The position numbers and the translations under genes are program-made. Under the pieces are notes generated by a model. The model was not told the DNA's origin. It was given only the letters and a program-made list of their open reading frames with translations, and did not search any database. Below, piece after piece: positions 38,804-59,030 of a stretch of 64,000 bases of DNA; the stretch's first letter is position 1; each line of letters begins with the position of its first letter. The stretch lies in contig OZ251224.1 in NCBI GenBank assembly GCA_965240325.2, forward strand, positions 744,001 through 808,000, written 5' to 3'. The DNA comes from Rebecca billardiae RCC1528. Taxonomy: Eukaryota; Protista; Haptophyta.

Positions 38804-41800
38804 TCACCCCTGAGACAAACCGATGCCACAGCAGCAGGTCGTCATGTGCGCCTCGAGCTCGGTTGTCAGCACGGTGATGCCACACAAAACGCAGACGACC
38901 GTCTCGGACGACTCAGACGGCACCGCGGGACGGGCGGGCGTGGCCACTGCGGTCGGCTCTGTCGTGTGTCTCGTCTGGTCCACGCACGCCGAGCTGTTGC
39001 AGCGCAGAGGAAGCGCGCTGCCAGGGGTGCGCGGCGGGGCAGCGATGCGCTGGCCGCTGACGAGTGCGTGAATGTGCCGCTGTCGGGCCTCGAGTTGCAG
39101 CATGGCACGGTGGTCGGAGGCAAGGCGAGAGGCGAGGGCCTCGGCAATCCCGCGCGCGTACGCGGGCGCTGCGCGCGCGGGTGCGAGTGCTTGCTCATCC
39201 GCGTAGGCCAGGTGCGTGCCCAGCTGCTCATCCGCGCTCGCGTACCGCGCGTCCGTGATGACGAGCACTGCGCTGAGCTTCTGCAGCTTGTTGAGCGCGC
39301 GGTGAGCGTGCTGCTCCCCGCGCACCTTGATGCACAGCACGTCCGTGGCCTCGGGTGTGCCCACAAAGACGTTGCAGTAGCTGCCGCCGCTGCCGCCGCC
39401 GTCAAAGGGCTCGCTGACGTGCAGCAGCGCGCCCAGTGTGCAGAACTCGCAGCCCGCGCGCAGCTGCGCGAGTGCCGAGAACGGCAGCGGCGCGCGCGGC
39501 AGCAGCTCCTCCGAGCGCTCCTCGATGCGCGTCCACGTGGTGAGGCGCGTCGTGGTGAACGACAACGCCTGCGGGTGCGGCGCGTGCACCGTCACCGCGT
39601 CCGCAATCACGACAGCGGATGCGCCCGCGCCAGGGCGCGCGCTCGCGAGCGAGAGCGCCGGTGGGCGCGCAGCGGACACGTCGACGAAGGTGAGCTCCCA
39701 CACAGAGCCGTCGAGAGCGCCGGCGGCGTGCAGGTGTTCGGGTGGGCGCCACACCGTCAGCTCCGCGACGGCCGTCGAGTCTCCGGCGTCGCTGACGGCG
39801 AGGCGGCAGAAGGGCACCACGTCGCGTGCGCTCAGGACCAGCTCGGCCGGCGGCGCGGCGCCGCAGCACTCGGCAAGCGACGCGCGCTGATCCGCGCTCA
39901 GCGAGCCGACGCAGCGCGCGGCGCGCTCAAAGTCGGTCTCGACGAGCGCGAGCGCGAGCGCCGCGAGCTCCGCCCCGCTCGCCTCCTGCAGCAGCTCCTC
40001 GAGCTCGCCCGGCGCGCCCGGCGGCACCGGCCGCGCGCGGCGCGCGCCGCTCTGCAGCGCGGAGTGGAAGAGCTCGAGCGCGCTCGCGTGCTCCGCCGCG
40101 CGCCGCTCGACGTGCTCCTGCTCGGCGCGCTCGGAGCGAACGAGCTTGGTGCCGTCGGGCCGGCGCTCGAGGAACTGCAGCGGGTAGTGCCGCTGGACGA
40201 CGAGGCGGAGCGCGGGCGCGGCGCCGCCACCGGCCGAGAGCGTGCCGAGCGACAGCCGCGGCGGGGTGCGCATGCGCTGCGCGCCGAGCTGCGCGTCCCA
40301 GCGCGCAAGCCGGGTGCCGTTGGCGTGGATGCCGAGCCGGGGCTGCCCCCCGCCGTCGCCGCCCGACAGCCGCGCGCCGCACACGAGGAGCTTCACGCCG
40401 GGCCGCACCTTGCCGCGTCGGCACAGGCTGGTGAGCGCGGGGTCCAGCTCAGCGCCGACCACGGCCCACCCGTCGGTGAGCGTGGCGCGAGCGAGCGGCT
40501 GCGCCGGCTCCGCCGCCGCACCGGCGACGGCGGCGCGCTCGGCCGGCTGCGCGCGGCCGCCGACGGTCAGATCGCACACGCACACGACCATCGCGCGCGC
40601 CGGATGCGCGTCGCCCTCCACGACGCGCTTGAGCACCGACCGCTGGTTCGCCACCAGCTCGCGCTCGTACCGGTAGCACAGCTGGCGCAGCGTCCGAGCC
40701 TCGCTCAGGTACACCGCAGCCGGCGAGCTGGCAGCGCCGAAGCGCGCCTCCGTGGCGGCGAGCTTCCACACGACGAGGGCAAAGTGGCGCTCGACCCACG
40801 CACGCCCATCCTCCCCCTCGAGCCGCGCGCCGCGCTCGCGCAGGAGCCCCAGAAAGTGCGCACTGCCGCGCGGCGGCGTGCCGCCCTCGTCCGCACCTCC
40901 GAAGGCAAAGGTGCGAGCGGCAGCGAAGGTGCGCGCGCTCGCAATGAGCCGCGCGCGCGCCGAAGCGAGCGGCATGCCGGGGTCCACAGAGGCGGCGAGA
41001 GCGCGCAGCGACATCCGACGCCGCGCCGCGAGCGCGCTGAGATCAAACAGGCTCGGGAGCGCAGACGGTGCGGGTTGCGCGCGCGGCGCTGTGGCTGCGA
41101 CCGCGGCCGCGGTGCGGATGCCATTGCGTGGCGTGCCGCTTGCGCCGCCTGGTCCCGCGGGCGGCAGCGGCGGAGGCGGCGGCGTGGTGCCGTTGTTTGG
41201 GCGCTTGAGAGGCGGCTCAAACGGACGGCTGCGCGGGTGCCGCTTCGAACTCGAGGCCGACCCTGCCTGCGGGAGCGGCGGCGGCATCCGCTGGGCGCCC
41301 TGCGTCGGGACATGCGCGGATGCAAGCGCGGGGCTCTGCGCGTGTGGCTGGGGAGCCGGCATCAGCGGCGGCGCCGGCGGCGGCGCCGGCGGCGGTGGGA
41401 GCGGACGGAGCGGGACTCGCCCCGACACGCTTGACGCCTGCGGGTGCGGGCTCACGCCGATCGGCACGGCACTCGCAGCCTGCATCTGCGCTGGCAGTGG
41501 CGTGCGTTCCGCCGCACCCGCAGCGGGCGCGCCGCCTGCGCCGATGGCATCAGCCGGATGCTCGGCTTGCCCGAGCTCGGTCTCGAGCTCCTTCTCGAGG
41601 TCGGCCATGAATTGCATGGACCGCCTCATCGCCATCTCACTCACAGGCACGGCGCTGCCGCGTCCGGTCGCGAAGCCGCCAAATGCAGGCGTGGCATCGG
41701 CGCCGCCACAGGCGCGAGGCACGCGCTCGGCAGGCGCGCGCAGTGGCGTCTGCGTGGGCGTGCCCTGTGCGGCGTGCTCGTTGAGCCGCTTGATCTCGGA

Positions 41801-42277
41801 GAAGTTGATTGCGCCGCCCCCACCGCGGTGCCAGACTGGCCTGGTCGGCGGACACGGAGGCTGGGGCTGAGGCTGCGCCGGAGGAGTTGGGTGCGGGCGG
41901 CGCGCATGCGCAGCTTTGCGCACCGCGCCCTCACACTGGTTCGCTTCCTTGAATGCGGCGAAGTCCGTTGGTGCGCCGCCGCCACGAGACCACACAGGCC
42001 GCGCGTTCCCCGCGAGCCCGGGCGAAGCGGCCGCCGTGCTCGACGGCGGAGCTGCTGACAGCGGCCGCGGCTGCGTCCGGGCCTGCTCTGCCGGCTGCTG
42101 CAACCCCTCGCTCGGCGGCGTGTCCTGTGAGAGCATGTAATTGAACTCCGTCTCCGTGTCGCCAGATAGGCCTGACTGGCACAGCTCGCCGCCCAAGGGC
42201 CGCGCGAGCAGCAGCGCCTGCGGCGTCGTCATCGCCTCCAGCGGCGACGCCGCCTCCGGGGAGCCCTGCGCCAGCAT
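38804..42277 (-). CDS. BRCA2: BRCA2 homologue
   Basis: BRC repeat FATGRGSAVPVSEMAMRRSMQFMADLE; PhePP motif PFEPPLK; helical domain WVERHFALVVWKLAA and YRYERE..QRSVLKRVVEGD; OB1 LTDGW and HANGTRLARWDAQLG; OB2/tower QRHYPLQFLE. No introns seen. Confidence 0.92.
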   Translation of the reverse strand: MLAQGSPEAASPLEAMTTPQALLLARPLGGELCQSGLSGDTETEFNYMLSQDTPPSEGLQQPAEQARTQPRPLSAAPPSSTAAASPGLAGNARPVWSRGGGAPTDFAAFKEANQCEGAVRKAAHARRPHPTPPAQPQPQPPCPPTRPVWHRGGGGAINFSEIKRLNEHAAQGTPTQTPLRAPAERVPRACGGADATPAFGGFATGRGSAVPVSEMAMRRSMQFMADLEKELETELGQAEHPADAIGAGGAPAAGAAERTPLPAQMQAASAVPIGVSPHPQASSVSGRVPLRPLPPPPAPPPAPPLMPAPQPHAQSPALASAHVPTQGAQRMPPPLPQAGSASSSKRHPRSRPFEPPLKRPNNGTTPPPPPLPPAGPGGASGTPRNGIRTAAAVAATAPRAQPAPSALPSLFDLSALAARRRMSLRALAASVDPGMPLASARARLIASARTFAAARTFAFGGADEGGTPPRGSAHFLGLLRERGARLEGEDGRAWVERHFALVVWKLAATEARFGAASSPAAVYLSEARTLRQLCYRYERELVANQRSVLKRVVEGDAHPARAMVVCVCDLTVGGRAQPAERAAVAGAAAEPAQPLARATLTDGWAVVGAELDPALTSLCRRGKVRPGVKLLVCGARLSGGDGGGQPRLGIHANGTRLARWDAQLGAQRMRTPPRLSLGTLSAGGGAAPALRLVVQRHYPLQFLERRPDGTKLVRSERAEQEHVERRAAEHASALELFHSALQSGARRARPVPPGAPGELEELLQEASGAELAALALALVETDFERAARCVGSLSADQRASLAECCGAAPPAELVLSARDVVPFCRLAVSDAGDSTAVAELTVWRPPEHLHAAGALDGSVWELTFVDVSAARPPALSLASARPGAGASAVVIADAVTVHAPHPQALSFTTTRLTTWTRIEERSEELLPRAPLPFSALAQLRAGCEFCTLGALLHVSEPFDGGGSGGSYCNVFVGTPEATDVLCIKVRGEQHAHRALNKLQKLSAVLVITDARYASADEQLGTHLAYADEQALAPARAAPAYARGIAEALASRLASDHRAMLQLEARQRHIHALVSGQRIAAPPRTPGSALPLRCNSSACVDQTRHTTEPTAVATPARPAVPSESSETVVCVLCGITVLTTELEAHMTTCCCGIGLSQG

Positions 42278-42421
42278 GGCTCGCCGCGGAGAGTTGACTT
42301 GACCCGACTGGTTGGCGGGCTGGCGGGAGTGGCTGTGGAGCTTGGGCAGCGCCCGCAGCGGTGCTGCGGACCCGGACTCCTGTTGGCACGATTTCGTCGA
42401 TCGACGAGATTCGCGAACGTC

Positions 42422-43057
42422 ATGGCGTCGTCGTCTCACCTCCGCGCGCTGCTCATGCTTGCAGCAATGGCGACGGCAGTCGGCGAGCGAGGTCCCGTCA
42501 AATGGCGAGCTTCGAAGACAGTCATGCGCACAGTTGCTGCGCGCCCGCCCCCGGACACTCTGGAGTCTTTCTTCTCCACTCCCGAGATGCCAAGAACGGT
42601 CATTGAGTGCAACCCTGGCCTGGCATCAGCGACGTGCATGGGCACGCTCGAGGACGGCGCAACGGTATGGGAGGGTCGTACGGCACCGATCAAATTTGGC
42701 CCTTTCGTCAGCGTCACGAGCATCATCAAGCTGAAGATGCGCTTTGACGCCACGCTTCCATCTCCCACGCTTGTGTTCGAGGCACTTGAGTCGCGAACTG
42801 AGTCTGATGGGCCGCCTCTGCTGGTGCGCTTCATAGATTCCATCTTGCCTGACGTGCGCTCCAAGAACACCGTATCAGCAGCTGGGTCAACGCTGACCTC
42901 GGAGGCTTTTCTCGAGCTCGACCTTCCCATGCCTCGCTGGCTGCCTGTGCCTCGAGCACAGATCGAGCAAGCGGGACCGCCCATCCTGGAAAAGCAGCTC
43001 GAGAACGACCTGACTGCACTGCTAGAGAAGCTGGCTGAGCTGTACACATCAAAGTAG
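42422..43057 (+). CDS. DUF1997-like (START-fold) protein with signal peptide
   Basis: N-terminal SP; LELDLPMPRWLPVPRAQIEQAG..LEKQL..L...Y C-terminal pattern. Confidence 0.6.
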   Translation: MASSSHLRALLMLAAMATAVGERGPVKWRASKTVMRTVAARPPPDTLESFFSTPEMPRTVIECNPGLASATCMGTLEDGATVWEGRTAPIKFGPFVSVTSIIKLKMRFDATLPSPTLVFEALESRTESDGPPLLVRFIDSILPDVRSKNTVSAAGSTLTSEAFLELDLPMPRWLPVPRAQIEQAGPPILEKQLENDLTALLEKLAELYTSK

Positions 43058-46235: not shown

Positions 46236-47239
46236 CCGGAAAAAAATCGTTACATCAGTAGTTGTACGGGCATGCCAACCGTGCCATTACTGGTCTCACT
46301 CTCAGCCTCAGGTCTGTCCGAATCGGACAATAGTGAAATTGAATAGAGTTAGACGACTGCGCGACGGAGGGTGCACCGCCACCGCGGGCCCCGAACTACG
46401 TTCGTTCTACGGAAAAGGACCGCGGAACGCGGTCATAAATACGGATAGTTATAATAATCGGCGTCATCAGGCACTCGTCGCGGGCCTGGCCCGATGACTA
46501 GGGCTCAAGCCAAAGCTCAGGTGGCGCACGACAGCCAGCTGCCAACGGAGAAGATGCTGTTCTCAGCGCCCAGTCACTTCGAATCAATTGCGTCAAACCA
46601 CTTCTCAGAGATCTCATCGGTGAACTCGAAGACCACCTCGCCCAGGCGCATGTCCAGTGATTGCATCTCACCTGCGTCGTTGGTTCTGGATGCAAGCTGT
46701 CCGGATGACCAGGTGAATGCTCTCCCGAGCCAATCGCGCCAGCTGCCATCACGTGGAGTTGCTGTGCCACTGCTGCTTGGCGTTTCGGGCGCTCGTTGCT
46801 TCTCCATCACGCGTGCCGCCTTGTGAACAGGCACGCAGCTTTTCAGGAAGCGCGGGCTACCGGTACGATCGGAGCCAAAGGGGCGGCCACTCAGGAAGTG
46901 GTTGAGAGCAGCGCACGCGTGCACGATACTCGCTCGTAGCGCACGCGATGCAAGGCTCGTTCGCGGTGCAGGCTCGAGGCCGTTGACGCCCATGCGGCAT
47001 TGGCCTCGACCCGGACTTCTCGGGAAGTTCATGCTCGGAAGTCCCACAGCGCAGGGCAGTCACTACAAAAAATCCCCGCCAGCGGAGCATCGGGCAAGAC
47101 CCAGACCCTCCGCCGGCGGAGATTTTTGTGGCCACGAAAAATCCCCGCTGGCGGAGCATGGAATGCTCCGCTGGCGGAGCCTGGGCTTGCAGGATTGACA
47201 CAACAAACTAGTTACCAGAAGTCTGTCAACCACCGAACA

Positions 47240-48758
47240 GCAGTCACCTCCGCTGGCGGAGCTCGCTAATGAGCCGTGCCTTTTGTAAACTAATACACTT
47301 GGCCGACTTGAACTGAGCTCCGCTGGCGGAGCTTCGGGGGCGCCGAATGCCATTCTTGATGACCCACCTGACTTGAACTGAGCTCCGCTGGCGGAGCGTC
47401 GGTGGTCAGCGCCGTGTGTCATATTGGAGAAATAATGCTAAGCCTTTCAACGCATTCATACTCTGCTGTGCCACACATTCAACCTCCGCTGGCGGAGCTC
47501 ACTGGCCTATTCGACTTGAACTGAGCTCCACTGGTGGAGCCTCGGCTGCGCCGAATGTCCTTAATCGATGACCCACTCTCGACTTGAGCTGAGCTCCCCT
47601 GGCGGAGCTTTGGTGGCGCCGCATGTCATGTTGGAGTAACGCGGAAGCGTCAACCGTAGTCATATCTATATTGATACTCAACCTCCGCTGGCGGAGCTCG
47701 CGTACCTACTAGTATTCAACTTTAACTGAGCTCCGCTGGCGGAGCCTCGGCTGTGTCGAATGTCCTTATCGATGGCCCACTTCTTGACTTGTCACTTGAT
47801 GAGCTGAGCTCCGCTGGCGGAGCTTTGGTGGCGCCGCATGTCATATTGGAGTAATGATGCGAAGTCGTTAACCGTAATCATATCCATATATATCGACACT
47901 CAACCTCCGCTGGCGGAGCTCACGGACCTATTCGACTTGAACTGAGCTCCGCTGGCGGAGCCTAGGGCTGTGTCGAATGTCCTTATCGATGGCCCACATC
48001 TTGACTTGAGCTGAGCTCCGCTGGCGGAGCTTTGGTGGCGCCGCATGTCATATTGGAGTAATGCGAAATCGTCAACAGCAATCATATCCATATTGGCACT
48101 CAACCTCCGCTGGCGGAGCTTGCTGACCTATTCGACTTGAACTGAGCTCCGCTGGCGGAGCCTCGGCTGCGCCGAATGTCCTTATCGATGGCTCACTTGA
48201 CTTGAGCTGAGCTCCGCTGGCGGAGCTTTGGTGGCGCCGCATGTCATATTGGAGTAATGCAACGCCGTTAACTACTACCGTAATCATATCCATATTGACA
48301 CTCAACCTCCGCTGGCGGAGCTCGCGGGCCTATTCAACTTGAACTGAGCTCCGCTGGCGGAGCCTCGGGCTGTGTCGAATGTCCTTATCGATGGCCCACA
48401 TCTTGACTTGAGCTGAGCTCCGCTGGCGGAGCTTTGGTGGCGCCGCATGTCATATTGGAGTAATGCGAAATCGTCAACAGCAATCATATCCATATTGGCA
48501 CTCAACCTCCGCTGGCGGAGCTTGCTGACCTATTCGACTTGAACTGAGCTCCGCTGGCGGAGCCTCGGCTGCGCCGAATGTCCTTATCGATGGCCCACTT
48601 GACTTGAGCTGAGCTCCGCTGGCGGAGCTTTGGTGGCGCCGAATGTCATATTGGAGTAATGCGAAGTCGTTAACCGTAATACTATCCATATTGACACTCA
48701 ACCTCCACTGGCGGAGCTCGCGGACGTATTCAACTTGAACTGAGCTCCGCTGGCGGAG
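47240..48758 (-). repeat. Left subterminal array, ~200-bp unit with three hairpin cores
   Basis: CTCCGCTGGCGGAG cores at about 92/68/42-bp spacing; 402-bp higher-order duplication (47900 vs 48302). Confidence 0.93.
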
Positions 48759-49399
48759 TCTCTGCTTGTGGTTTGCTGCAATTGGGGCTGGGCAGCCTGG
48801 GCTCAGCATGGGGCAGCTGTTCACAGCCCAGGCGGGGCGTCACCGCCTGTGAGCCGTCGGTGGGCAGGGCCGACGGCGTCGCAGAGCTCATGCGTGGGAG
48901 CAGCGCGTCGAGGAAGCGATCAAGGTCGAGAAGGAAGGGGCAAGCAGCAGGGGCTGCCTGTACGTTTGTACATGCCTCCACACCGGTGCACATCACCCTT
49001 GCTCACTGCAGTCGTGAACAGTGCTGCCACTCATCTCATCATCGCTCACCATGCAGTGACGGCCGAGCTGCGGCGAACTCTCACAGGCACCGAACACGCA
49101 TCGGCTGTACCCGCTGGTGCTGGCATGCGCTGTCCTCTACTTGCTGTCGGACAGCAAGGAGACGGCACAGCCGCATCTGCGAGCGGGCGAGGTGATGCTG
49201 TCCAGTGTCCTCTGCTCAGCGAGGCCGAGAGGCTAAGCACGGATCACGGATAGTGAGCCCTGGTATCTCAACGCATCCAGGAGAGCAGTTGGTGCATGCC
49301 TGTGCTCAGACGTGCAGGACCAACCATCCGGTGCTGATTCAAGCACCCGCGCCAACAGCGGCGGCACTCAACTCCACGCTGCTGATGCGGCCGCACAGC

Positions 49400-50866
49400 T
49401 GCAGGGATGGTACCACGGCGGGCGACGGCGGGCGCTGCAGCTGGCAGCTCGGTGGTGCCTGCCCGAGGGGCCTGGGCGCCGGGCGCACCGAGCGCGATGA
49501 CGCCTCTCGCATCGCCCAGCGCGCTGGAGCCGCTGTCATCCGACGCTGCTGTGCCCGCGCCCAGCTTGGGCTGCAGCAGCTGCGCTCGACTCCGCGCCGA
49601 GTGCGGCGGCAGCAGAGGGGATGGTGCCACCGCGGGCTGCGGCAGGCGCTGCAGCTGGCAGCTCGGTGGTGCGCGCCCGAGGGGCCTGGGCGCTGGGCGC
49701 AGCGAGCGCGGTGACGTTGCTCGCCTCGCCCAGCGCGCTGGAGCCGCTGCCACCGGGCGCTGCTGTGCCCGCGTCGAGCGTGGGCTGCCGCAGCTGCGCT
49801 CGACTCCGCGCCGAGTGCGGTGGCAGCAGGGATGTTGCCACGTCGGGCGGCGGCTATCACTTTGGCTGGCAGCTCGGTGGTGCCTGCCCGAGGGGCCTGG
49901 GCGGTGGACGCACCGAGCGCGATGACGTTGCTCGCCTCGCCCAGCGCGCTGGAGCCGCTGCCATCCGGCGCTGCGGTGTCCGCGCCCAGCCGGAGTAGCA
50001 CGAGGTGCGTTCGACTCCGCACCCGTGCGGCGGCAGCAGCAGGGGTGGTACCACGGCGCGAGCGGCGGCAGTCGCTGCAGCTGGTAGCTCGGCGGTGCCT
50101 ACCCGAGGGACCTGGGCGACGGACGCGTCGAGCGAGCTGACGCCCCTCGCTCCCCCTATCACGCTCGAGCCGCTGCCATTTGATGCTGCTGCGCCGTTCG
50201 GGCAGCTGCAGACTCTGCGCAGTCTGCGCTCGACTCCACGCCGCGTGCGGCCGCAGGCAGCAGCAGCAGCGGGCCCGAGGGGCCTGGGTCACGGACGCAC
50301 CGAGCACAGTGACGCCTCTCGCCTCGCCCAGCGCGCTGGAGCCGCTGCCACCGGGCGCTGCTGCGCCCGCGTCCAGCTTGGGCTGCAGCAGGCCGCTCAA
50401 TCAACTTCACGCCGAGTGCGGCGGCAGCAGCAGGGATGTTGCCACGGCGGGCGGCGGCTATCACTTTGGCTGGCAGCTCGGTGGTGCCTGCCCGAGGGGC
50501 CTGGGTGGTGGACGCACCGAGCGCGGTGACGTTGCTCGCCTCGCCCAGCGCGCTGGAGCCGCTGCCATCCGGCGCTGCGGTGTCCGCGCCCAGCCGGAGC
50601 AGCACGAGATGCGCTCGACTCCGCACCCGTGCGGCGGCAGCAGCAGGGATTGTACCACGGCGAGCGGCGGCAGTCGCTGCAGCTGGTAGCTCGGCGGTGC
50701 CTGCCCAAGGGACCTGGGCGACGGACGCGCCGAGCGAGCTGACGCCCCTCGCTTCCCCTATCACGCTCGAGCCGCTGCCATTTGATGCTGCTGAACCGTT
50801 CGGGCAGCTGCGGACTCTGCGCTCGACTCCACGCCGCGTGCGGCCGCAGGCAGCAGCAGCAGCAGG
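49400..50866. repeat. Internal GC-rich tandem repeat (~190-210 bp units, ~602-bp higher order)
   Basis: Recurrent GCTGGCAGCTCGGTGGTGCCTGCCCGAGGGGCCTGGG..CGCCCAGCGCGCTGGAGCCGCTG; mirrored at 51700-52635. Confidence 0.88.
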
Positions 50867-53270
50867 CTGGTAATTAACAGCTGCTGCTCAGATCTCCGTG
50901 ACTGCTCGGTTGCTGCGTATGAGCCAGGTGAGTGAGCCGCTGAGTCGCAGGGGCCGCGTGAATTATGACTTGCGACCGCACGCACGCCGGTATATAGGCT
51001 TAAGACGGCGTACGTCCGAGTCCCGATCAGCAGCGCAGGAGTTTTGAGAACGCGGTGACGAGTCACACGCAGCTACTCTTATTATGATGGCGCTATACTT
51101 TTTTCTGTACGTAGTGGTAGTAAGTTACGACTACGCTGCCGGCCTCGCCCTCAGCATTACATTGACGGCGTATGGTAGCGCAGGTCCGCCTGATGACCGT
51201 TTTATTGCGCATCTTCATGATGATGACGATATGACGATAACGACTCCTCCGACTCCTGAGTCACATAAGTGTGACACCGCCACTGGATGACACGGGCTAC
51301 TTACGTACTCAGCTCAGATCATGCGCGCCTGCTACTCGTAGTCGGGCTCCGGTCAGCGGGGAGCGCGCGGCGCATCATCATCATCAGTCGCTATCTGATG
51401 CATATCCGTGGCGCAGCGATGTCGTAGTACTGATGATGCGTGCGCTGAGATCTGGGCCGCGGCACTTCGGCGCGCCTTGCTCGGCCTCACCGACGCCGGG
51501 CCGTACTTGTTCGCGCGCCCGGCGCCGGGCTAGCTCAAAGAGCTGACCGCAGCGGCTCCCGTGCCCCGGAAGGCCTGCGGCCCTCACAGGTCATTGGCAG
51601 GCAGCAGTGTCCGGGGCTGAGGCCTGCCGGGTTCTCCCCGATTCGAATTCACCAATGTGACCGATGGTACCGCCTGCTGCCGTCAGCCGGCGGAAGAAGT
51701 GTCACAACGGCTGCTGCTGGCCAGCATATCGGACGCGTGCATCGGCGTCACCGCATTGGGCGCGTCTGCCGCCCAGGCCCCTCGCGCGCACACAACCGAG
51801 CTGATCGCTGCATCCACCTCCGCCGCCGCCAGTGGCGCCTTCCCTGCTGCTGCAGCCACACTCGGCGCGAGTCGAGCGCAGCTGCTGCTGCCTAGGCCGG
51901 TCACGCCCCTCGGGCGCGCACCACCGAGCTGCCAGCTGCATCGACCGCCACCACCCGCCGAGGCATCATCCCTCCCACTGGCGCGGAGTCGAGCGCAGCT
52001 GCCAGCTGTGACAGCTAGCTGCCCCGGCGGGGCGCGGAGCCGCGGACACCGCAGCGCCGGATGGCAGCGGCTCCAGCGCGCTGGGCGAGGCGAGCAACGT
52101 CATCGCGCTCGGTGCGTCCACCGCCCAGGCCCCTCGGACAGGCACCACCGAGCTGCCAGCCAAAGTGATAGCCGCCGCCCGCGTGGTACCATCCCTGCTG
52201 CTGCCGCCGCACTCGGCGAGGAGTTGAGTGCAGCTGCGGCAGCCCAAGCTGGGCGCGGGCAGCGCAGCGCGCGATGGCAGCGGCTCCAGCGCGCTGGGCG
52301 AGGCGAGCAGCGTCACCGCGCTCGCTGCGCCCAGCGCCCAGGCCCATCGGGCGCGCACCACCGAGCTGCCAGCTGCAGCGCCTGCCGCAGCCCGCGGTGG
52401 CACCAAGTCCCCGCTGCTGCCGCCGCACTCGGCGCGGAGTCGAGCGCAGCTGCTGCAGCCCAAGCTGGGCGCGGGCACAGCAGCGTCGGATGACAGCGGC
52501 TCCAGCGCGCTGGGCGATGCGAGAGGCGTCATCGCGCTCGGTGCGCCCGGCGCCCAGGCCCCTCGGGCAGGCACCACCGAGCTGCCAGCTGCAGCGCCCG
52601 CCGTCGCCCGCCGTGGTACCATCCCTGCAGCTGTGCGGCCGCATCAGCAGCGTGGAGTTGAGTGCCGCCGCTGTTGGCGCGGGTGCTTGAATCAGCACCG
52701 GATGGTTGGTCCTGCACGTCTGAGCACAGGCATGCACCAACTGCTCTCCTGGATGCGTTGAGATACCAGGGCTCACTATCCGTGATCCGTGCTCAGCCTC
52801 TCAGCCTCGCTGAGCAGAGGACACTGGACAGCATCACCTCGCCCGCTCGCAGATGCGGCTGTGCCGTCTCCTTGCTGTCCGACAGCAAGTAGAGGACAGC
52901 GCATGCCAGCACCAGCGGGCACAGCCGATGCGTGTTCGGTGCCTGTGAGAGTTCGCCGCAGCTCGGCCGTCACTGCATGGTGAGCGATGAGGAGATGAGT
53001 GGCAGCACTGTTCACGACTGCAGTGAGCAAGGGTGATGTGCACCGGTGTGGAGGCATGTACAAACGTACAGGCAGCCCCTGCTGCTTGCCCCTTCCTTCT
53101 CGACCTTGATCGCTTCCTCGACGCGCTGCTCCCACGCATGAGCTCTGCGACGCCGTCGGCCCTGCCCACCGACGGCTCACAGGCGGTGACGCCCCGCCTG
53201 GGCTGTGAACAGCTGCCCCATGCTGAGCCCAGGCTGCCCAGCCCCAATTGCAGCAAACCACAAGCAGAGA

Positions 53271-55762
53271 CTTCCGCCAGCGGAGCTCAGTTCAAGTTGA
53301 ATACGTCCGTGAGCTCCGCCAGCGGAGGTTGAGTGTCAATATGGATATAGTATTACGGTTAACGACTTCGCATTACTCCAATATGACATTCGGCGCCACC
53401 AAAGCTCCGCCAGCGGAGCTCAGCTCAAGTCAAGTCGTGGGCCATCGATAAAGACATTCGGCGCAGCCGAGGCTCCGCCAGCGGAGCTCAGTTCAAGTTG
53501 AATAGGCCCGCGAGCTCCGCCAGCGGAGGTTGAGTGTCAATATGGATATGATTACGGTAGTTAACGGCGTTGCATTACTCCAATATGACATGCGGCGCCA
53601 CCAAAGCTCCGCCAGCGGAGCTCAGCTCAAGTCAAGTCGTGGGCCATCGATAAAGACATTCAGCGCAGCCGAGGCTCCGCCAGCGGAGCTCAGTTCAAGT
53701 TGAATAGGCCCGCGAGCTCCGCCAGCGGAGGTTGAGTGTCAATATGGATATGATTACGGTAGTTAACGGCTTTGCATTACTCCAATATGACATGCGGCGC
53801 CAGCAAAGCTCCGCCAGCGGAGCTCAGCTCAAGTCAAGACGTGGGCCATCGATAAGGACATTCGGCGGAGCCGAGGCTCCGCCAGCGGAGCTCAGTTCAA
53901 GTCGAATAGGCCAGTGAGCTCCGCCAGCTGAGGTTGAGTATCAATATGGATATGATTACGGTTGACGGCTTCGCATTACTCCAATATGACATGCGGCGCC
54001 ACCAAAGCTCCGCCAGCGGAGCTCAGCTCAAGTCGAATAGGTCAGTGAGCTCGGCCAGCGGAGGTTGAGTGTCAATATGGATATGATTATGGTTAACGGC
54101 TTCACATTATTCCCATAAATGGCATGCGGCGCCACCAAAGCTCCGCCAGCGGAGCTCAGCTCAAGTCAAGACGTCGGCCATCGATAAGGACATTCGACAC
54201 AGCCCGAGGCTCCGCCAGCGGAGCTCAGTTAAAGTTGAATACTAGTAGGTCGTCCGCGAGCTCCGCCAGCGGAGGTTGAGTCTCAATATAGATATGACTA
54301 CGGTTGACGCTTCCGCTTTACTCCAATATGACATGCGGCGCCACCAAAGCTCCGCCAGGGGAGCTCAGCTCAAGTCGAGAGTGGGTCATCGATTAAGGAC
54401 ATTCGGCGCAGCCGAGGCTCCACCAGTGGAGCTCAGTTCAAGTCGAATAGGCCAGTGAGCTCCGCCAGCGGAGGTTGAATGTGTGGCACAGCAGAGTATG
54501 AATGCGTTGAAAGGCTTAGCATTATTTCTCCGATATGACACACGGCGCTCAAGTTGAATAGGCCCGCGAGCTCCGCCAGCGGAGGTTGAGTGTCAATATG
54601 GATATGATTACGGTAGTTAACGGCGTTGCATTACTCCAATATGACATGCGGCGCCACCAAAGCTCCGCCAGCGGAGCTCAGCTCAAGTCAAGTGGGCCAT
54701 CGATCAGGACATTCGGCGCAGCCGAGGCTCCGCCAGCGGAGCTCAGTTCAAGTTGAATAGGCCCGCGAGCTCCGCCAGCGGAGGTTGAGTGTCAATATGG
54801 ATATGATTACGGTAGTTAACGGCTTTGCATTACTCCAATATGACATGCGGCGCCAGCAAAGCTCCGCCAGCGGAGCTCAGCTCAAGTCAAGACGTGGGCC
54901 ATCGATAAGGACATTCGGCGGAGCCGAGGCTCCGCCAGCGGAGCTCAGTTCAAGTCGAATAGGCCAGTGAGCTCCGCCAGCTGAGGTTGAGTATCAATAT
55001 GGATATGATTACGGTTGACGGCTTCGCATTACTCCAATATGACATGCGGCGCCACCAAAGCTCCGCCAGCGGAGCTCAGCTCAAGTCGAATAGGTCAGTG
55101 AGCTCGGCCAGCGGAGGTTGAGTGTCAATATGGATATGATTATGGTTAACGGCTTCACATTATTCCCATAAATGGCATGCGGCGCCACCAAAGCTCCGCC
55201 AGCGGAGCTCAGCTCAAGTCAAGACGTCGGCCATCGATAAGGACATTCGACACAGCCCGAGGCTCCGCCAGCGGAGCTCAGTTAAAGTTGAATACTAGTA
55301 GGTCGTCCGCGAGCTCCGCCAGCGGAGGTTGAGTCTCAATATAGATATGACTACGGTTGACGCTTCCGCTTTACTCCAATATGACATGCGGCGCCACCAA
55401 AGCTCCGCCAGGGGAGCTCAGCTCAAGTCGAGAGTGGGTCATCGATTAAGGACATTCGGCGCAGCCGAGGCTCCACCAGTGGAGCTCAGTTCAAGTCGAA
55501 TAGGCCAGTGAGCTCCGCCAGCGGAGGTTGAATGTGTGGCACAGCAGAGTATGAATGCGTTGAAAGGCTTAGCATTATTTCTCCGATATGACACACGGCG
55601 CTGACCACCGACGCTCCGCCAGCGGAGCTCAGTTCAAGTCAGGTGGGTCATCAAGAATGGCATTCGGCGCCCCCGAAGCTCCGCCAGCGGAGCTCAGTTC
55701 AAGTGCCGAGTGTATTAGTTTACAAAAGGCACGGCTCATTAGCGAGCTCCGCCAGCGGAGGT
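53271..55762 (+). repeat. Right subterminal array, ~200-bp unit, containing a 1053-bp tandem duplication
   Basis: Unit period is 201-202 bp; identical ORFs at 53732/54785 and 54276/55329 are offset by 1053 bp. Confidence 0.93.
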
Positions 55763-55968
55763 GACTGCTGTTCGGTGGTTGACAGACTTCTGGTACCATA
55801 ATAACTAGTTTGTTGTGTAGTCATTCCTGCAAGCCCAGGCTCCGCCAGCGGAGCATTTCATGCTCCGCCAGCGGGGATTTTTCGTGGCCACAAAAATCTC
55901 CGCCGGCGGAGGGTCTGGGCCCCTTGCCCGGATGCTCCGCTGGCGGAGACTTTTTGTAGTGACTCTTC

Positions 55969-57453
55969 CGGGACTTCTCCGAGCTTACAGGATCGCCAGT
56001 GAAGACCTCCCGCGCCCCTCGAGATCATACGGAGTTGGCGGCGAGATCGCGCTCTTGCGGCGGCGGCGGGCGGGAGCGCGCGCCGGCGCTCGCTCGCGCG
56101 CTCGCTGCCCGCAGCGCGCGCGTCAGGTCGTCGCGAGCGCTCGCGCACCGGCGCTAGGGCGCGTGCCACCTGCGCACGCCGCTCGTTCGCGCCTGCGCGC
56201 TCCGCTCCGCCGCTGCGGCGCTTGCGAGCGCTCGCCGTGTCCTGCGCCGGTGCTGGGCCGCGTCGAAAGCCTGGTTGTGCGGCCAGCCAAGTGTGGCGTT
56301 TGCGGCTTGGCGCGCGAGCGCGCGACGCAGCGGATGGCGCGTGTAAGCCGCCCAGCCAGCGTCACTCGCCTCGTGCGCCGCGCGCCGACCGCGCGCCCCA
56401 GATTCGACGCCGAGCGCTGCTCGGTCACAGTGAGACGGGTCGGCGCTCCGCATCGCAGAGCCGCGCGTGGTCGCGCAGAAGAGGCCGCGCGTGGCCGGCG
56501 CGGCCGCTGTGTGCCATGGCCCAGACCTCAATCGCGTCCTCAGTTGCTTGCCTTGCCCAAGTGGTCACGCCGCACTCACGAGTGGGCGACTTGACCTGAC
56601 CCTGCGTGCCGGGCCGTATCTCATGCCGCCAGCAGTGGGCTCGAACAAATCCATCCTACTCCATTGGTCGACGGCTTCAAGAACTCGATGGTCATGGTCT
56701 AGTAGTGCGCTGATGACACGCGCGCGATCTCCGTGAGCGCAGCTCTTCCATGCAATGGCTTATGTGGCTACGATCGGTGACGGCGTGACCTCGAGACACC
56801 CGTTCTGAATCCACCTCACGTGTCTGTGTACGGGCAAAAGATTTGTGACTGCTTGGGCGAGGCGAGCGTTCTCACCTGCCGCGGACGCGATTGAAGTCTG
56901 GACCATGGCACACAGCGGCCGCGCCGGCCACGCGCGGCCTCTTCTGCGCGACCACGCGCGGCTCTGCGATGCGGAGCGCCGACCCGTCTCACTGTGACCG
57001 AGCAGCGCTCGGCGTCGAATCTGGGGCGCGCGGTCGGCGCGCGGCGCACGAGGCGAGTGACGCTGGCTGGGCGGCTTACACGCGCCATCCGCTGCGTCGC
57101 GCGCTCGCGCGCCAAGCCGCAAACGCCACACTTGGCTGGCCGCACAACCAGGCTTTCGACGCGGCCCAGCACCGGCGCAGGACACGGCGAGCGCTCGCAA
57201 GCGCCGCAGCGGCGGAGCGGAGCGCGCAGGCGCGAACGAGCGGCGTGCGCAGGTGGCGCGCGCCCTAGCGCCGGTGCGCGAGCGCTCGCGACGACCTGAC
57301 GCGCGCGCTGCGGGCAGCGAGCGCGCGAGCGAGCGCCGGCGCGCGCTCCCGCCCGCCGCCGCCGCAAGAGCGCGATCTCGCCGCCAACTCCGTATGATCT
57401 CGAGGGGCGCGGGAGGTCTTCACTGGCGATCCTGTAAGCTCGGAGAAGTCCCG
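55969..57453. mobile_element. Long-TIR element (~570-bp inverted arms), possibly MULE-like
   Basis: 55969-56539 is a near-perfect reverse complement of 56883-57453, with a ~340-bp spacer. No TSD found. Confidence 0.75.
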
Positions 57454-57470
57454 CTGTGGGACTTCCGAGC

Positions 57471-59030
57471 ATGAAAGTAGGCGACATGGCGGACGCCTGC
57501 GCCGGCGAGGCGCGCGAGGCGTCTGCCGAGTGCGCGGTCAAGGTGGGCGCGGCGGATGGCCCACCCTCTGACGACCTCTTTGCTCGACTCTCGGACCTCG
57601 CATGCGCGTCGTGGAGCCTGTCACGCGCGCGGGCGAGCGCGGCTGTGATCAACAGCGCGCCCGCACCCGTGCGGAGCGACCTGCTGCAGATCCTGCACGT
57701 GCCCACGCACGTGAGCAAGCGCCAGCTGCGCTTCTTCTTCGGCGAGCTTGCGGTGGTGATTCGTGAGGCGTGGCTTCTCAAAGACGGCGCGCCACACAGG
57801 TACAGCGTGCTGCTGCGCGCGTGTTGCGTCGCACACGCCGAGGTGTTCCGCGCAGCCCGGCACGGCATGCGCTTTACGCCCGTGGATGTGGAGGTTGCCA
57901 TCATCCTGCCGATTGCCGAGGTCTCGCACGCATGTGCGCCGGTGATCGAGCCGAGCACGGCCGCCGGCGCGCGTGACGTGGCCGAGGAAGGCGCTGCAGG
58001 CCACGAGGCGCCCATGGTCAACGCGGACGCGTGGACGCAGCTGCCCGGCTGCGCAGTCTGCCTGACGCGGCTCGAGCCATCGATCTCGGGAGTGGTTGCG
58101 CGCGCGTGCACGCACGCGAGCGCGTGCATGTGTCTGTCCCAGGACTGCAGCGCGGGCTGCCGCGTGTGCCGCGTGGTCGGGCGGCGGCTCTCGCTTGCGA
58201 TGGCGACCCAAGCGACCGACGCCTCGGCGCCGCGGCCGGCCGAGGCGAGACCACCACGCGACGAGGAGGCCGGTCCAGTGTGCTTCATGTGCAGCGAGCG
58301 CCAGCCCCTCTGGATCTGCCTGGTCTGCGGCACGACCGGCTGCGGCAGGTACGCGTCGATGCACGCGCATGCGCACTACGTGCGCTCACGCCACGAGCTC
58401 GCGCTCGACCTGTCTACGCAGCGCGTGTGGGACTACGAGGGCGACCGCTTTGTGCACCGCGTGATGGAGATGGGGCTCGACGGCGACGACGAGGACAACT
58501 TTGAGCTCGAGCTGCCGGACGAGGCGCTGCCGCCGGAGGCGATGCAGCCGCGGCTCGCCGACGGCGCGTCCCGCGCGGAAGCGGGCGGCGAGCACGCCGA
58601 CGACGACGGCCATTCCCCGGCCAAGCTCGACCGCGTGCTGCGCGAGTACTCGCTGCTGCTGTCGGGCCAGCTCGAGGCGCAGCGCACGTTCTACGAGGAG
58701 CAGGTGGCCCAGCAGAGCGAGCAGCACGCGCGCGAGCTGAGCGAGACGCGCGCGGCGCTTGCTGCCCTGATCGCAGAGCTTCGCCCCGACGAGGTGCAGC
58801 GAGCCGCGCGCGCCGCGAGCCGACGCGAGGGCACGGCAAGCCGCCGGCTCGAGCAGCTGCGGCGTGAGAAGCTCGACCTGCAGGAGCTCAACCAGCAGCT
58901 GCTCGTGAACACGCGCGAGCTCCGCGCCGAGATGGCCTCGGCGGAGGCGCAGGCGGTGGAGGCGGAGCGCGCGCTCGAGGCGGCGCAGCGCGAGCTGGAG
59001 GAGACCCTCATGCAGCTCACTGCTCAGTGA
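57471..59030 (+). CDS. BRAP: BRAP2/IMP/Etp1-like protein (BRAP2 domain, RING, ZnF-UBP, coiled coil)
   Basis: ILHVP..RYSVLLR..F....HGMRF; LPGCAVCLTRLE; LWICLVCG..GCGRY...HA..HY..H...LSTQRVWDYEGDRFVHR; EYSLLLSGQLEAQRTFYE. Confidence 0.92.
   Translation: MKVGDMADACAGEAREASAECAVKVGAADGPPSDDLFARLSDLACASWSLSRARASAAVINSAPAPVRSDLLQILHVPTHVSKRQLRFFFGELAVVIREAWLLKDGAPHRYSVLLRACCVAHAEVFRAARHGMRFTPVDVEVAIILPIAEVSHACAPVIEPSTAAGARDVAEEGAAGHEAPMVNADAWTQLPGCAVCLTRLEPSISGVVARACTHASACMCLSQDCSAGCRVCRVVGRRLSLAMATQATDASAPRPAEARPPRDEEAGPVCFMCSERQPLWICLVCGTTGCGRYASMHAHAHYVRSRHELALDLSTQRVWDYEGDRFVHRVMEMGLDGDDEDNFELELPDEALPPEAMQPRLADGASRAEAGGEHADDDGHSPAKLDRVLREYSLLLSGQLEAQRTFYEEQVAQQSEQHARELSETRAALAALIAELRPDEVQRAARAASRREGTASRRLEQLRREKLDLQELNQQLLVNTRELRAEMASAEAQAVEAERALEAAQRELEETLMQLTAQ

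Follow-up and report, generated by a model that had tools for sequence, protein, structure and literature searches.

The window analysed here is a 64-kb stretch of DNA, and all positions below are counted from its first base. It contains a foldback element of 8,919 bp (referred to as E) at 47052-55970 on the plus strand, with a CAGGGC end at its left and with ends that are common to all copies of its family. The inverted palindrome recognized in the initial annotation is real. Three matches between the arms, all far above chance, are 93.6-99% identical: 47061-47961 with 55961-55060 (93.6%), 48003-49984 with 54034-52041 (96.1%), and 48757-49621 with 52408-53272 (865 nt, 99%). The left tip, CAGGGCAGT (47052-47060, plus strand), forms the outermost 9 bp of the inverted repeat on that side, and in every copy it adjoins the CACTA motif at one of the two ends. 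Within the inverted repeat the motif itself, CACTACAAAAA (47061-47071, plus strand), takes up positions 10-20 and is not terminal. It does start at 47061, and its reverse complement ends at 55961, as had been reported, but the two had been taken for the termini, and the true ends lie 9 bp further out on both sides. Likewise AGT and ACT, previously read as flanks, are instead part of the inverted repeat and are found in every copy. The right tip of E (55962-55970, plus strand) is ACTCTTCCG, as opposed to ACTCTTCTG, which is the normal right end in the family.

The outermost part of each arm is a tandem array. The left outer array (47052-48766) is built of ~200-bp units and holds 26 copies, counted with at most one mismatch, of a 14-bp palindrome, CTCCGCYRGCGGAG; the right outer array (53273-55970) holds 39. 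Throughout the 64-kb window this palindrome has 53 perfect occurrences, or 65 with up to one mismatch, all confined to the two outer arrays of E and none elsewhere. By analogy with Galileo (PMC3688188), the outer arrays are probably the binding arrays of a transposase. Next comes a non-repetitive block of ~650 bp, which had been placed in both arms and is measured here at 48757-49400 and 52635-53272; its left copy is 99% complementary to the right arm within the match to 52408-53272. Inside the blocks lie inner arrays of 214-bp tandem units (49404-50867 on the left, where they are GC-rich, and 51744-52633 on the right). Two tandem duplications are private to E, one of 1,056 bp in the right outer array (53493-54549 = 54549-55602, 99.4%) and one of ~600 bp in the left inner array (49671-50274 versus 50269-50867, 91%), and it is because of them that the arms are unequal. 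Arm lengths of 2.9 and 3.9 kb had been given; the inverted identity stands, and with the inner arrays counted the arms come to ~3.8 and ~4.2 kb of the 8.9 kb.

Between the arms is a unique, non-palindromic and non-coding core of 0.9 kb. Its existence had been noticed correctly, and its bounds now fall at about 50868-51743 rather than ~50870-51690. With its long inverted arms, non-coding core and tandem arrays, E has the structure of a foldback element. Apart from GC-rich noise the core has no reading frame that is conserved, and it is rich in indels between subfamilies. No convincing gene was present in any family copy examined. That the core might be a nested transposon or an RNA was considered and rejected, as it occurs only inside the 16 copies of this family and an Rfam search with it gave no match.

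E sits inside an unrelated foldback transposon of 1.5 kb, F2, which has TCA...TGA ends, a 4-bp target duplication and, genome-wide, at least 14 full copies, and which here is separated by 12 nt from the start codon of a BRAP2-like gene downstream of it. E has split off the first 23 bp of F2, its left tip (47029-47051), from the rest (55971-57474), which comprises the remainder of the left arm (55971-56539), a spacer (56540-56882) and the right arm (56883-57474). The duplication made by F2, AAGT, is found at 47025-47028 and 57475-57478. When exactly 47052-55970 is excised, the interrupted F2 arm is restored without a gap: the two arms then align over 592 of 592 positions with 3 mismatches and with a single copy of the heptamer CACAGCG. 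This heptamer is the retained left copy of E's 7-bp target (47045-47051, plus strand) and forms the loop of the terminal hairpin of F2; it occurs once, reverse-complemented, at 57452-57458 in the uninterrupted arm. The short inverted similarity between the flanks of E, not significant by itself (243 of 2,000 shuffles), proved to be this same hairpin.

Hence E would have inserted into the terminal hairpin of F2, in its 7-nt loop, the right junction of E would later have lost 7 bp, and the copy would have grown through tandem duplications in its arrays. Comparison of the right junction with the right arm of F2 puts the deletion at 7 bp, two of them the final bases of E and five from the duplication, where the reference is a paralogous empty site (F2's other arm) and not an allelic one. 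This deletion would be the reason why E has no matching duplication. On the best reading, the last two bases of ACTCTTCCG would be a remnant of the target duplication. The loss took the right tip with it, and so the copy is probably immobile; E is an older, damaged member of its family. Ectopic recombination with another copy was also considered, and rejected when no matching heptamers were found against L033, L042 or the solo ends L043 and L048.

The genome search for other copies that the initial annotation had proposed yielded 16 two-ended copies on 12 contigs, which fall into two subfamilies, are all palindromic in layout and mostly have target duplications. The layout was checked in subfamily B as well as in the canonical copy of 6,987 bp. 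Of the 34 ends that match genome-wide, 32 belong in pairs to the 16 copies, and these tips occur on no other type of element. A genome-wide search with the 12-nt tip pattern gave no further inverted pair of ends, and a metagenome scan with a 30-nt end of the family gave no match. One site, C26:1000231-1000248, agrees with the left tip as far as position 15 and differs beyond it. In each copy one tip is CAGGGC and the other CAGAAG, both continuing into the common AGTCACTAC, so that the family ends read CAG...CTG and 9 further bases lie outside the CACTA motif in all copies. The elements measure 7-9.4 kb and none carries a gene. A perfect 7-bp target duplication surrounds 8 copies, and in one more 6 of 7 positions match; another four are accounted for by small junction deletions, while L033 has both tips intact and no matching duplication. 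Copies thus stand at unrelated loci with target duplications, as expected of a mobile element. Seven copies, each of 6,987 bp, share 99.83-99.97% identity (2-12 differing sites in 6,989 columns), and judging from this near identity the family moved very recently. About 10 elements that belong to a further family share the ~650-bp block, among them those at C17:645230-650690 and C15:1896870-1905039.

Comparison of that block also bears on how the two arms are related. Within one copy its two versions are 99.4-100% identical, whereas between the two subfamilies either arm is only 95.6-96.6% identical. The arms are therefore kept alike, and conversion from arm to arm would achieve this. The suggestion that the arms derive from one another holds at the level of the family only and not as an event at the present locus; the palindrome of E was not created there.

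We conclude, with a probability of roughly 85%, that 47052-55970 is one copy of a non-autonomous family of cut-and-paste DNA transposons of the foldback type, with very long inverted repeats. Since insertion duplicates 7 bases, the family is a Galileo-style foldback family, an already known kind of element rather than a new CACTA form. A transposase made elsewhere would bind the 14-bp palindromic motif of the outer arrays, present there in dozens of repeats. It would then pair both ends, cut at the CAG tips and insert with a 7-bp stagger, as in Galileo of the P superfamily.

The genome search with the tips found neither an autonomous copy nor a transposase gene between ends of this type. As a tentative best guess, we would place the transposase in the P superfamily. 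The 7-bp duplication agrees with this; no P-type (THAP9-like) transposase was found enclosed by such ends. There is one P-like transposase gene in the genome (C21:1532845-1536810, minus strand), with a match to PF21787 and a sub-threshold match to PF21788 in a frame of 1,322 codons. Within 19.8 kb around this gene the family ends, the motif arrays and recognizable inverted repeats are all absent, and an exhaustive search there for inverted repeats with a 7- or 8-bp duplication returned only GC-rich noise. The gene is a candidate source of transposase only. A more speculative proposal, which we regard as quite unlikely, is that the family owes its mobility to a lineage of transposases, either P-related or new, that has yet to be described from haptophyte-type algae. 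Such a transposase would read arrays of the 14-bp palindrome and tolerate near-perfect palindromes of 7-9 kb, whose arms would stay identical through hairpin-templated conversion; palindromic sequences or hairpin loops would be its preferred targets.

Other sources of transposase have to be weighed. The family could be a non-autonomous one of hAT type that relies on a hAT transposase. hAT elements typically have short binding motifs in subterminal arrays, the CAGGG of one family tip presumably fits the hAT terminal pattern, and the flanks of family copies hint at a palindromic target. However, the duplications are of 7 bp and not the 8 bp typical of hAT, the second tip is CAGAA, and the only match to the hAT dimerisation domain in a Pfam search of the genome contains a stop codon and is unlinked to the family. 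We therefore consider a hAT origin unlikely. Still more doubtful is a Mutator/Foldback-type element that resembles FB of Drosophila or Tm1 of nematodes and depends on a MULE transposase. FB and Tm1 are hairpin-shaped, have composite inverted repeats and are non-coding in most copies, and their outer motifs differ slightly at the two ends and are followed by arrays of short repeats (PMC3169594). The composite repeats, asymmetric outer motifs and inner short repeats seen here recall Tm1 in particular (PMC3169594), and the Pfam search found two genes with a MULE domain. Yet FB and Tm1 duplicate 9 bp (8-10 bp; PMC3169594) as against 7 bp here, and neither MULE gene lies near a copy, each being on another contig or far away.

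Very improbable is the possibility that this is a true CACTA/EnSpm element, both arms of which derive from one end and which is moved by a TnpD-type transposase. The initial annotation had offered a CACTA-derived foldback family, and of this the foldback family survives and the CACTA derivation is not supported. The likeness to CACTA/EnSpm consists in the CACTA pentamer within CACTACAAAAA near both ends and in the repeat-rich subterminal regions. Against it, the motif begins 9 bp inside the conserved inverted repeat (CACTA being positions 10-14), the ends are not CACTA...TAGTG, and the target duplications are of 7 bp and not of 2-4 bp (usually 3 bp). A six-frame scan of the 72-Mb genome with PF02992, the domain of the CACTA transposase, gave no match, but its controls were equally silent, and hence absence of a CACTA transposase is not proven. 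Finally, we give almost no credence to a single local event at this locus, whether inverted duplication, aberrant transposition or a fold-back of the assembly: E does lack a matching target duplication and its arms are unequal, but a junction deletion of 7 bp, seen in comparison with the other arm of F2, accounts for the former and the tandem duplications for the latter, and 16 copies of the same palindromic form on 12 contigs, mostly with target duplications, refute any rearrangement confined to one locus and speak for a foldback family.

What does this foldback family teach? A CACTA motif near an end is insufficient for a CACTA call; the tips and the duplication length have to be established from several copies. 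The nesting of E in F2 is a case in which insertion into a hairpin loop, followed by a junction deletion, results in loss of the duplication without recombination. Palindromes of 7-9 kb are mobile in this genome, were recently active and lie beside gene starts, which bears on genome stability and on silencing by small RNAs. The identity of the transposase is the sole question of wider interest, and otherwise the significance is mainly one of annotation. The E family is an ordinary foldback family, and what is new is the family, not the kind of element.

The closest known system is Galileo, which together with Kepler and Newton belongs to the P superfamily in Drosophila and makes 7-bp target duplications (PMC2775673). 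Its long inverted repeats are internally repetitive, with ~210-bp tandem repeats that expand and contract, it has THAP sites for its transposase inside the repeats, and some of its copies are without matching duplications (PMC2775673, PMC3573991, PMC3688188). There are differences. Arms of 3-4 kb here compare with up to about 1.3 kb in Galileo, the elements of 7-9.4 kb have no gene and neither an autonomous copy nor a linked P-type transposase was found for them in the genome, the host is a GC-rich alga and not an insect, and the palindromic duplication consensus of Galileo, GTAGTAC, has no counterpart. By the Repbase rule, related ends agree at positions 1-11 with at most one mismatch and share the same duplication length (PMC4455052). 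The likeness to Galileo drawn here is one of layout and duplication length. Both have 7-bp duplications, very long repetitive arms with ~200-bp tandem units that vary in number between arms and between copies, binding sites presumed to lie within these repeats, and many gene-less two-arm copies, some of them without matching duplications.

E, the foldback element under study (47052-55970; 8,919 bp), is a real and well-explained feature, and it belongs to an ordinary kind of element. The giant palindrome with CACTA motifs at both sides that was reported in the initial annotation is indeed there: CACTACAAAAA stands at 47061, its reverse complement ends at 55961, and the DNA between them forms a giant imperfect palindrome. 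Inverted pairing reaches 93.6% for 47061-47961 against 55961-55060, 96.1% for 48003-49984 against 54034-52041 and, at the block of about 650 bp, 99% across 865 nt. Tandem Repeats Finder gives units of about 200 bp in the outer arrays of both arms and GC-rich units of 213-216 bp in the inner arrays, and the core (about 50868-51743) is unique sequence, as had been noticed before. A 14-bp palindrome, CTCCGCYRGCGGAG, occurs 53 times in perfect form in E (65 times with at most one mismatch). All its occurrences are confined to the two outer arrays; none was found outside them in the 64-kb window.

The first 240 bp of E have many matches across its own genome. An 18-nt end pattern matches 34 ends, which represent 16 two-ended elements, spread over 12 contigs, and two solo ends. 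In every copy nine conserved bases precede the CACTA motif (reading inward, CAGGGCAGT or, at the opposite end, CAGAAGAGT). The tips of the family are therefore CAG...CTG, and CACTA, previously taken for the terminus, occupies positions 10-14 of the inverted repeat. The AGT and ACT that were read as flanks are part of this repeat and are conserved in every copy.

Perfect 7-bp direct repeats flank eight copies, and in one further copy the duplication matches at 6/7 positions. Four loci (L038, L041, L045 and L047) are compatible with a 7-bp duplication plus a junction deletion of 1-4 bp; a 7-bp duplication with a 6-bp deletion is a less secure fit for L042. L033 has intact tips, yet its flanks show no matching duplication, and at L040 one flank is N in this comparison. 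Junction deletions of 1-7 bp seem to be common in the family (loci L031-L047). Such small deletions may be scars of failed excision. Where a tip is altered (E itself, L041 and L042), the damage is always at the CAGAAG end. Nine target sites could be reconstructed (L031, L032, L034-L037, L039, L046 and 57432-57478 of the window). They feature T at the third base ahead of the duplication and A at the third base beyond it, a pair that is complementary in 7 of the 9, and no consensus exists inside the duplication across the nine. This is a hint of a palindromic target, in a small sample and with marginal significance after correction.

Solitary ends also occur. L044 (4939-5258; G000:C17:639938-640257) is a solo fragment of about 320 bp from the CAGGGC end, 91% identical, with its CACTA motif decayed to CAAAAC and unrelated sequence beyond. 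Another site, G000:C26:1000231-1000248, matches the left tip up to position 15 and diverges beyond; it stands alone and may be the footprint of an excision or the remnant of an end. The 12-nt CAGGGC tip has ten solitary matches, compared to roughly 3 per variant with a reversed-pattern control, and no further paired ends with this tip lie within 20 kb of each other in the genome.

Two explanations of the palindrome had been offered. A one-off rearrangement does not agree with 16 two-ended copies on 12 contigs, for which the palindrome is the family form. The other, a foldback family, is borne out by the canonical copy and a second subfamily, equally palindromic, and by the 7-bp duplications of the family. 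The palindrome is thus the normal form of the E family. In the canonical copy, the commonest version (6,987 bp), the arms (7-2668 versus 6981-4121) are 96-97% identical around a centre of about 1.45 kb. The second subfamily comprises three copies of 8.5-9.0 kb with the same tips and palindromic layout; identity is about 90% in the body and 86-89% in the core. Within one copy the 650-bp blocks of the two arms are 99.4-100% identical, whereas any arm-to-arm comparison across the two subfamilies gives only 95.6-96.6%. Hence, the arms evolve in concert. Despite this, a tip difference of three bases (GGC versus AAG) is maintained in both subfamilies. Seven 6,987-bp copies differ at 2-12 positions only (99.83-99.97% identity), which indicates a very recent burst.

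E is older than this burst, as it is only 97-98.7% identical to its nearest relative, a copy on contig 8. Relative to the canonical copy, its left outer array is longer by about 270 bases, and it has an inner-array duplication of about 600 bp (49671-50274 / 50269-50867, 91%) and a right-arm tandem duplication of 1,056 bp (53493-54549 / 54549-55602, 99.4%). These additions explain its unequal arms. E apparently lacks a target duplication, and its right tip is CCG where the family has CTG. Its surroundings are informative in this respect. The 24 bp immediately left of E are repeated inverted at 57452-57475 (100% identity), and a 571-bp stretch starting at 55969 matches 56883-57453 in inverted orientation (99.5%). 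Once E is removed, the flanks, put together, can be aligned with the inverted segment on the right at 592/592 positions, gapless and with three mismatches, meaning that the flanks are the two arms of a second, unrelated foldback transposon, F2 (47029-47051 plus 55971-57474; about 1,527 bp, with 592-bp arms 99.5% identical and a 343-bp spacer). F2 has TCA...TGA ends and a 4-bp duplication, AAGT, at both sides. The genome contains at least 14 full copies; three of them are about 100% identical, which makes F2 young as well.

F2 ends in a hairpin with a stem of 12 nt and a loop of 7 nt before the return stem, and E lies exactly within the loop. In the intact arm of F2 the loop heptamer is present as a single copy. 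In the filled arm one copy stands at the left, and only its last two bases, after ...CTCTTC, at the right. A single step, a 7-bp loss after canonical insertion, would yield this right junction exactly; it would have removed the terminal TG of E and the first five bases of the duplicated heptamer. Judging from these junctions, E appears to have inserted normally and later lost its right tip, and it is probably immobile now. The lack of a direct duplication, noted earlier, is explained by this reconstructed junction deletion.

The nested pair of E and F2 puts 10.4 kb between a BRAP2-like gene (57456-59030, + strand; BRAP2 and zf-UBP domains) and whatever preceded it. Outside F2, the earliest in-frame ATG of this gene lies at 57486, only 12 nt past the right end of F2; an ATG at 57471, within the F2 tip, is in frame as well. 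About 4.6 kb left of E there is a BRCA2-like gene (38804-42439, - strand), whose long open frame contains BRCA2 OB1 and helical domains.

The open frames of E overlap on both strands, as expected for DNA of 65% G+C. Comparison of the subfamilies, which differ by many indels, revealed no conserved frame in the core beyond GC-rich noise, and E has no Rfam match at gathering thresholds. The core sequence is confined to the 16 copies. The family combines cut-and-paste-type ends, 7-bp duplications and recent activity with no coding capacity. A transposase acting in trans would recognise the reiterated 14-bp palindrome and move the family. In Galileo, the THAP domain of the transposase has binding sites at a distance of about 70 bp from the element end, and others in the tandem repeats that its long inverted repeats contain (PMC3688188).

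What might this transposase be? A domain search found one P-type gene in the genome (PF21787 above cut-off, PF21788 below), which also weakly matches 6p5a, the solved P element transposase. It is a single-copy, uninterrupted frame of 1,322 codons (L050/L051, G000:C21:1532845-1536810, - strand) directly adjoining a 2,229-codon Copia-type polyprotein frame (RVT_2). No E-family ends or motifs and no inverted repeats were found in the 19.8 kb around it. This gene may have been domesticated, or it may be a candidate for the transposase of the 7-bp families. The genome has one match to the hAT dimerisation domain, with a stop codon inside, and two to the MULE domain, not linked to E-family copies; the CACTA transposase domain has none, with the search controls likewise silent. 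About ten further elements (G000:C17:644632-651288, C15:1896271-1905634, C36:62919-70726 and about seven more) also contain the 650-bp block, in inverted pairs spaced by 6.3-9.4 kb. Over the whole block they are 88% identical to E, and among themselves 93-100% over the first 269 bp. They lack the E-family core and, by these sequence comparisons, appear to be a related family with a larger interior. Their interiors are the best remaining place to seek a transposase.

Regarding class, FB/Tm1 (Mutator) and hAT types were rejected on duplication length, and the CACTA type on tips and duplication length. The CACTA derivation initially proposed is contradicted by the CAG...CTG tips and 7-bp duplications. 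The transposase link that defines the P superfamily was sought and not found, so membership is not established. Among described systems, Galileo of Drosophila is the closest (PMC2775673, PMC3573991). Like the E family, Galileo makes 7-bp duplications, and its inverted repeats are long and internally repetitive, with tandem units of about 210 bp that grow and shrink separately in each arm. Both have two-arm copies without genes, and in both some copies lie between non-matching heptamers.
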